DNA of 62,981 bases, the filler included, from Olpidium bornovanus S191 (lineage: Eukaryota; Fungi; Olpidiomycota): NCBI GenBank assembly GCA_017911155.1. It is 29 parts of 29 records of this genome, joined end to end, with 100 filler letters (N's around TTAATTAATTAA, not from the genome) between each part and the next. Parts side by side here need not be neighbours in the genome. Positions count along the whole stretch, not along the records: positions 61,431 to 62,981 come from JAEFCI010009887.1; 28 more parts are not named here. One strand, 5' to 3'. A program made the position numbers and the translations under genes. Position 1 is the stretch's first letter. Each line of letters begins with the position of its first letter. The notes below the pieces were generated by a model. It searched no databases, had not been told where the DNA came from, and saw nothing but the letters and a program-made list of their open reading frames with translations. Below are positions 61,799 to 62,981 of the stretch, in pieces.

Positions 61799-62981
61799 AT
61801 GCTCAACCGTCCGTCGCCGTCCCCGTTTCTGCGCGTTGTCGGTCGCGTGGTGCGTCGGCCCCTGTTTGGTGCGGTCGGACCTGGCGCGGCGAGGGCAAGT
61901 CAGCAGGCGCGGCGGTTCGGCCTCGCCGGGATCCAACAGACGGAGGGCGGACACGGGCTCGAATACGCCCCGGGCGCTCGGCGGACGGAAGCTCAGCTCG
62001 CCAGGCGTGAGCCTCCGCAGACTTCTGCCAGCAGTAGTGATAACTGCAAGGTGGAGCGTTGGACGGCCAGTGATAGTGAGAAGCTCGTTGGCATTGTGCT
62101 CGGCTCAAGACAAACCGGCAGGAAACGCCGTTGGGGAAACGTTGCCAAAGAATTTTCGTCGAGATCATCAAACGCCGTCGCACTCAAATTCTACAGGCTG
62201 AATTCCGTTGTCCGCAAAGACGCGCAGACTTCATCGGCCGAGAGTAATCGCTACAGCAGAAAGCGTTGGGCTGCCAACGATGTTGAGAAGCTTATTCGCA
62301 TTGTGCTCAGTTCAATCCAAACAAACGGGCGGCCAGGATGGAAAGAAGTTGCCGGGAAATTTTCGTCGAGATCCCCAAAAGCTGCCGCACTTAAATTTTA
62401 CAGTCTAACGCCCACAAAGACTTATATCTCCTCCTGGAGACGTTGGACAGCCGCCGATAACGATAAGCTTGTCAAATTTGTGCTTAACGCAATGCAAACC
62501 GACGGGAAACCCGGGTGGAAAAATGTGGCCCGGCAGTTTCAATCGAGATCAAGGTCATCTGCAGCGTGCAAATTTTACAGGCTGAAGCCTGGTGTTCGGT
62601 CGATAGTCGTCGGTAGTTGGTCCGAGCAGCATACGTGGGCTGTATTGGGGAATGTTGGACAGCAAGACGCCAGAGCCCGCACGGAAAACTTGCCGTCTTG
62701 CGAAAATCTTCCAGCCCGAAGTAAGGCTTTAAAGGCTCGCAGTTTAACTTCATCTCGACTAGCCGAATTTATGCCTGCGTTGGGTAAATTACGCTAGATT
62801 CAAGACGTCTTCTACGGCAAACTTCGGGGTATCCGAGAGATTTCAACCTTCGAAAAAGCCCCCGAAACCATAATAAATGGTGGAGCTGCGGGGATATGAC
62901 AACGCTGATACAGTTACGACAAACCATACCTGTTGACTGGGCATATGTCAGCCGTGTGCTTGGGCGCAGTCCAAAAGCATG
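61799..62981 (+). CDS. Multi-Myb/SANT-repeat protein (at least 4 repeats) with an Arg-rich N-terminal extension; 3' end missing
   Basis: ATG 61799. Repeats at 62060-62200, 62267-62407 and 62444-62584 follow W(T/A)xxDxxKL..V..W..VA..F.SRS..A...FY.L. An in-phase intron at 62721-62797 (GTAAGG..CTAG) leads to another repeat, WSCGDMTTLIQLRQTIPVDWAYVSRVLGRSPKA. Confidence 0.88.

Follow-up and report, generated by a model that had tools for sequence, protein, structure and literature searches.

A lineage-specific, very basic tandem-Myb protein of Olpidium bornovanus, most likely nuclear, with a presequence-like N-terminus

The window (the whole stretch of Olpidium bornovanus S191 DNA that was analysed, 62,981 nucleotides) ends in a piece, positions 61431-62981 from record JAEFCI010009887.1, that holds the 5′ part of a gene whose product appears to be a lineage-specific, very basic (pI about 11) tandem-Myb DNA-binding protein, most likely nuclear; we put the probability of this reading at about 0.6. 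Myb/SANT arrays of known localisation are, to our knowledge, overwhelmingly nuclear. Against a nuclear reading stand the lack of an obvious classical nuclear localisation signal, as judged by eye, and an N-terminus that appears to have every textbook feature of a mitochondrial presequence, which is why a preliminary description of the sequence had proposed an organellar nucleic-acid reader. Below, transcript evidence, repeat structure, predicted fold, relatives and N-terminal composition are weighed for and against these readings.

Transcription and splicing of the gene

Transcript contigs identify this as a genuine transcribed, spliced, intron-containing eukaryotic gene. The piece has one long plus-strand reading frame, from an ATG at 61799 to a TAG at 62795-62797, and is covered from 61682 to 62981 by Logan contigs of a public run with the same species label (X1, a single study), which are RNA-like in that depth is zero over 61431-61638 and 62774-62797 has no colinear cover. 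The first contig spans 61682 to exactly 62720, plus one unmatched extra 5′ letter; its start lies 117 nt 5′ of the ATG, through which it runs colinearly, with the caution that contigs of this kind cannot prove a start site. The apparent 5′ UTR (61682-61798, plus strand) has an in-frame stop and no ATG, the first AUG being that at 61799, and M1 is the sole methionine ahead of the Myb repeats, so the N-terminal extension cannot be skipped and, on present evidence, would be translated as part of the protein. The preliminary description had named a downstream transcript start or an upstream exon, either of which would remove the extension, as observations that would speak against a presequence; the contigs begin upstream of the ATG, are colinear with the genome and bring in no upstream ATG, and this counts in favour of mitochondrial import.

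The contig start coincides with an A-rich tract at 61679-61712 (..CCAAAAAAATAACGGAAAAAAAGAAACGAAAAACAGG..), and the one partial read found in raw run X17, sampled at about 6%, maps about there (near 61681-61711). The tract may be a core-promoter or initiator region. No read came from two further raw poly(A)/cDNA runs, X14 and X8, at about 6% sampling, and the three runs together say nothing on expression or start site.

A joint in X1 contig 3 connects 62720 with 62798 at a depth of 7.2 and drops 77 nt with GT..AG ends, a phase 1 spliceosomal intron at 62721-62797 on the plus strand (GTAAGG...GCTAG). An intron hidden at exactly these positions had been predicted from the genomic sequence, and the transcript matches it to the nucleotide; its length is not a multiple of three. 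Exon 1 is open across 307 codons from the ATG. The in-frame TAG ends the read-through of the unspliced intron (a 332-aa ORF), and the spliced frame stays open through exon 2 (62798-62981, plus strand) to the end of the piece, which cuts it. A CATG, an NlaIII-type site, is present at both ends of the piece (61431-61434 and 62978-62981), a coincidence with a chance of about 1.5e-5. The contig thus has the look of one restriction fragment, which would explain why the gene breaks off inside repeat 4. At position 62039 the X1 contig has C and the window G, so that codon 81, which lies in the disordered linker, changes from GAT (Asp) to CAT (His); this probably reflects allelic or strain variation. 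Neither Rfam nor a tRNA scan gave any match in the piece.

A further joint, 62773 to 62929 (cut +1) in X1 contig 2, skips 155 nt at a depth of 18.1, compared with 7 at the sense splice. Because its CT..AC ends on the plus strand are canonical GT..AG on the minus strand, we read it as the intron of an antisense transcript (62775-62929, minus strand, CAG/GTATGG...ACGCAG/G), which overlaps both the sense intron and exon 2; it likely reflects a spliced antisense or convergent transcript over the 3′ part of the Myb gene. A sense-strand isoform would keep the plus frame, yet is less likely on account of the same splice ends.

These transcripts also bear on whether the gene might be a recent duplicate that is in decay or has no function, transcribed into a product without a role, which we consider very improbable. 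Such a duplicate would suit an incomplete gene on a 1.55-kb fragment, an antisense spliced transcript deeper than the sense splice, three large poly(A)/cDNA runs that gave 0, 0 and 1 read at about 6% sampling, and the outcome of an exact look-up, in which both the 332-aa read-through ORF and the 307-aa exon-1 product were absent from a collection of 15 billion proteins. It would not suit 307 open codons and a frame that continues after correct splicing, nor the constraint on the repeats described next, and a functional, most likely nuclear, protein remains the preferred reading.

Tandem Myb repeats

Three stretches of exon 1 matched each of three Pfam models above the curated gathering scores that served as cut-offs: PF13921, the best-scoring model (60.2 bits, cut-off 22.9), PF00249 (43.2 bits, cut-off 24.4) and PF22980 (33.4 bits, cut-off 27). 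Pfam, alignment and model confidence place Myb repeat 1 at residues 84-138 (62048-62212, net charge +8), repeat 2 at residues 153-207 (62255-62419, net charge +9), which was also superposed on c-Myb R2, and repeat 3 at residues 212-266 (62432-62596, net charge +9), all on the plus strand. The underlying DNA contains three direct repeats of 145 nt each (62055-62199, 62262-62406 and 62439-62583), of which copies 2 and 3 share 72% and 64% identity with copy 1. At the protein level the repeats are 51% identical to one another, which bears out the earlier view of three closely similar repeats, and W5, W29, S-R-S and K47-F48-Y49 are invariant across them. These identities, together with pairwise dN/dS values of 0.30-0.58, argue that the three N-terminal repeats are recent internal duplicates under purifying selection at the protein level. 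A dN/dS below 1 and the invariance of all fold-defining aromatics also argue against a decaying duplicate. The repeats follow one another with a period of 59-69 residues, and each has a pI of 11.0-11.3; that of the mature part is 10.7.

The inserted loop QT-x-G-x-x-x-W and the Phe or Tyr in place of the third Trp had been singled out as unusual. Both are real but not unique, as two of the distant relatives described below (P0002 and P0003) also carry an insertion between helix 1 and helix 2 (T-x-K-R-x-x-G-R-x-x-W) and a Tyr at the third aromatic position, so that the two traits appear to mark a loose subclass rather than a feature of this protein only.

The array appears to continue beyond the intron. 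Pfam found no match in the 60 exon-2 residues or in residues 267-307, and with a profile of the gene's own three repeats exon 2 scored no higher than shuffles. A broader Myb-repeat profile, built from 23 repeats of distant relatives, aligned its positions 3-43 to exon-2 residues 26-60 at 10.3 bits (E 3e-5, for one target), a score reached by 0 of 1000 shuffles, the best of which scored 10.1. In line with the preliminary description, which had placed another repeat after the intron, exon 2 appears to begin a fourth, more canonical Myb repeat at about 62875 (KWWSCGD...W..V...LGRSPKA), which is without the loop insertion and is cut by the end of the piece. The supposed degenerate segment before the intron fared otherwise: residues 267-307, at the end of exon 1 (62597-62720, plus strand), scored -0.9 and -1.3 bits as a Myb repeat with the two profiles, within the range of shuffles, and were blank in Pfam. 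With the cut one in exon 2 included, the gene has at least four repeats within the piece.

Predicted fold and mode of binding

AlphaFold2, run on an alignment that combined the query and 24 of the 25 hits described below, modelled all three complete repeats with pLDDT above 90. In each, helix 1 is long and helix 2 short, and helix 3 follows; in the model the QT-x-G-x-x-x-W insertion extends helix 1 and the loop that leads to helix 2. Each repeat is thereby predicted to form a Myb/homeodomain-like unit of three helices in which an extension of 4 residues lies between the first and the second, and such high fold confidence is a further point against a decaying duplicate. Values of pLDDT fell below 50 at residues 1-60, which were modelled without order, and at residues 71-81. 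Repeat 2 superposed on c-Myb R2 (1gv5) with an rmsd of 1.6 Å over 51/52 residues (Z 8.2). For the array as a whole the best matches were TvMyb2-DNA, Cdc5/CDC5L, SNAPc4, Reb1-Ter and c-Myb R1R2R3 (Z 7.2-8.6); their rmsd is large, since the repeats can turn freely relative to one another.

The query shares with c-Myb and R2R3-type proteins (1gv5, 1h88, 6kks) a three-helix repeat with a conserved aromatic core. It differs from them in that sequence identity is only 14-20%, in that its first two Trp are spaced by 23 residues (presumably 19 in c-Myb), in carrying Phe-Tyr where c-Myb-type repeats have the third Trp, in its repeat period of 59-69 residues compared with about 52, and, by eye, in a helix 3 unlike the base-contacting pattern of c-Myb. 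Reb1 of S. pombe (5eyb), SNAPc4 (7xur, 7zwc) and Trichomonas Myb2 (3osf), which were the top Foldseek/VIA-align matches over residues 86-265, likewise have at least three Myb units with linkers. They show no sequence-level orthology to the query (Foldseek E of at least 1e-3), and the flanking dimerisation and other domains of Reb1 and SNAPc4 are absent from the sequenced part of the query gene, which is truncated.

A net charge of +8 or +9 per repeat would suit nucleic-acid binding through the third helices. In the mode of action that we consider most likely, the positively charged repeats would place these helices in successive major grooves, and since the repeats are near-copies on a period of 59-69 residues, the DNA motif recognised by the array would most likely be periodic or tandemly repeated. 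Reb1, SNAPc4, c-Myb and TvMyb2 are multi-Myb precedents for this mode, and the place of action would most likely be the nucleus. Helix 3, which reads S-R-S-x-x-A-x-A-L-K-F-Y-R-L, is without the Lys/Asn pattern that we take to make the base contacts of c-Myb, so sequence-specific binding is not assured; a telobox identity was also considered, and helix 3 is, by eye, without a motif resembling what we take to be the telobox.

It is on this point that a different function, which we judge unlikely, has to be weighed. The repeats might be SANT-like protein- or histone-interaction modules, or non-specific binders of nucleic acid or RNA, and the protein a chromatin or RNP scaffold like spliceosomal Cdc5/Cef1. 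Helix 3 has, by eye, Ala, Leu, Phe and Tyr where c-Myb presumably has its base-contacting Lys and Asn, the Myb domains of spliceosomal Cdc5/CDC5L are among the top structural matches (Z 8.0-8.4), and the repeat profile finds no solved Myb domain by sequence, all of which would agree with such a scaffold. However, the strong positive charge of every repeat is unlike the acidic surface that we take to be typical of SANT domains, and Z-scores are tied between DNA-bound Myb proteins and Cdc5, so the fold does not separate this reading from DNA binding.

Relatives of the array

The DNA-binding array favoured here appears, from searches of large protein collections, to be a lineage-specific orphan for which no close relatives were found. 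Exon 1 had no match at E ≤ 1e-3 in a word-index protein search, and an exhaustive HMMER search returned 25 of 1.84 billion representatives at the same threshold, the best of them (E 1.1e-11, 30% identity) an unnamed array. All nine of the 25 hits that were scanned with Pfam are tandem Myb arrays. The only named relatives are from Linderina pennispora (KAJ1949355, hereafter P0004) and Rhizophlyctis rosea (KAJ3044993), both hypothetical proteins; with the arrays P0001-P0003, these metagenome and early-diverging-fungal proteins match the query at E 1e-11 to 2e-5 and 24-30% identity. Their likeness to the query is limited to the generic repeat, none is characterised, and their N-termini are acidic or lysine-rich and not presequence-like, P0004 excepted. 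A metagenome scan with an exon-2 24-mer gave 0 matches, and a feature search of the ESM Atlas found a weak (0.76) generic Myb cluster only.

Orthology to a known nuclear Myb factor had been named in the preliminary description as an outcome that would count against its organellar proposal. For this truncated gene, no orthologue of c-Myb, Cdc5, Reb1, SNAPc4 or a telomere factor was found among the 1.84 billion representatives, and the PDB likewise offered none: a phmmer search with exon 1 gave nothing at E ≤ 1, and the three-repeat profile, run against structures that include c-Myb, Cdc5, Reb1 and SNAPc4, found none of these at E ≤ 1. An ARID-domain match of the same profile (E 0.66) was insignificant and was set aside. 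That no nuclear Myb-factor orthologue was found in these collections counts, for its part, in favour of the mitochondrial reading.

The presequence-like N-terminus

Residues 1-48 (61799-61942, plus strand) resemble a matrix-targeting presequence in composition and hydrophobic moment, and are joined to the repeats by a GC-rich linker (residues 49-83, 61943-62047, plus strand; GC 0.72) that is modelled as disordered. They contain eight Arg (R4, 12, 16, 19, 20, 32, 38, 39), one more than had been counted before, and no Lys, Asp or Glu before E49, so that the acid-free stretch of about 48 residues stands as described, as does the RRF motif (R38-R39-F40). Candidate motifs of the type cleaved by MPP are visible by eye at R38-R39-F40-G41 and R32-A33-S34. 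The hydrophobic moment over 11 residues reaches 1.05 in the segment FLRVVGRVVRR (residues 10-20), a value above that of each of the 29 related proteins compared. Compared with known presequences (MPP R-2/R-3 sites, TOM20 phi-x-x-phi-phi motif), the query fits in its length, its Arg content and its freedom from acidic residues, and would fit in its amphipathic stretch and R-x-F motif; it is set apart by having 9 Gly and Pro among its first 40 residues and by a compositional bias that tracks the local GC content.

On the reading suggested by these features, about 40 N-terminal residues would be a cleavable matrix presequence and the mature Myb array would bind mtDNA or RNA, perhaps with a nuclear pool besides. 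TOM20 would recognise FLRVVGRVVRR, MPP with Icp55 would cleave at R38-R39-F40, and the targets would lie in nucleoid packaging, a repeated mtDNA element or the ends of linear mtDNA. We regard mitochondrial or dual targeting of this kind as doubtful, though clearly less remote than a SANT-like scaffold, and it is a shade more doubtful still that an imported array would read a repeated mtDNA element (a nucleoid site, or a terminal or other tandem repeat). The eight Arg in an acid-free stretch, the top-ranking moment, the R-x-F motif at residues 38-40, the contig that starts upstream of the first AUG and the basic mature part would all be in keeping with import.

The weight of the charge pattern depends on the DNA that encodes it. 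The first 85 codons are 72% GC and the repeats about 50%, with GC by codon position of 0.74/0.61/0.72 in codons 1-85 compared with 0.47/0.51/0.53 in the repeats; composition shifts abruptly within the coding region (61799-62053 versus 62048-62596), and the N-terminal extension resembles the GC-rich DNA upstream. The other two frames of the N-terminal DNA are also Arg-rich. As a control, codons 2-48 were shuffled with dinucleotides preserved and open frames retained. Of these open shuffles, 18% had no acidic residue and 15% had in addition at least eight basic residues, a trait thus expected from 72%-GC DNA, so the Arg-rich, acid-free N-terminus is weak evidence for a presequence. A moment of 1.05 was reached by about 1% of charge-matched shuffles, and all three features together by 0.12% of the composition-matched shuffles, which does favour import. 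The Arg-rich, acid-free character therefore looks to be largely a product of the local DNA, with the amphipathic periodicity alone being rare. It is quite common for random basic peptides to act, or to be scored, as mitochondrial targeting signals, and presequence predictors over-call basic peptides in GC-rich genes, which further tempers the mitochondrial reading, as does the AlphaFold2 model, with no ordered helix at residues 9-20 and pLDDT below 50 there.

Comparison with relatives lends import little. No conserved presequence was found among them, and P0004, a Kickxellomycotina Myb array, is the sole one to start similarly, with the presequence-like peptide MRFPCLNAIQRFTYQATRNLTTRPP. A search for relatives of P0004 returned two only (P0030 and P0031), with no conserved presequence; P0030, a second Linderina gene model, differs from P0004 by several internal deletions, and P0031, a partial Coemansia relative, continues N-terminally with more Myb sequence. 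Given this N-terminal extension in P0031, the presequence-like start of P0004 may be a gene-model artefact, and all three gene models look unreliable. A literature search found no mitochondrial Myb-array precedent. We therefore consider it more probable that the 48-residue Arg-rich extension would be a composition-driven disordered tail, derived from GC-rich 5′ DNA, than a mitochondrial presequence, and the nucleus stays the most likely place of action. The composition shift would fit a recently recruited 5′ extension, and a presequence, if it is one, was possibly born when such a GC-rich extension joined a duplicated nuclear Myb gene.

Implications

Import is plausible but unproven, and present evidence does not strongly favour it. 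If the N-terminus does direct import, the Myb fold would join the HMG-box and mTERF as DNA-binding modules recruited to mitochondria, this would be the first organellar use of the fold, and the gene would be a tractable example of how GC-rich 5′ DNA can give rise to a presequence. Should it be nuclear, the protein would be one more fast-evolving orphan factor built on a Myb array and an example of recent internal repeat duplication.
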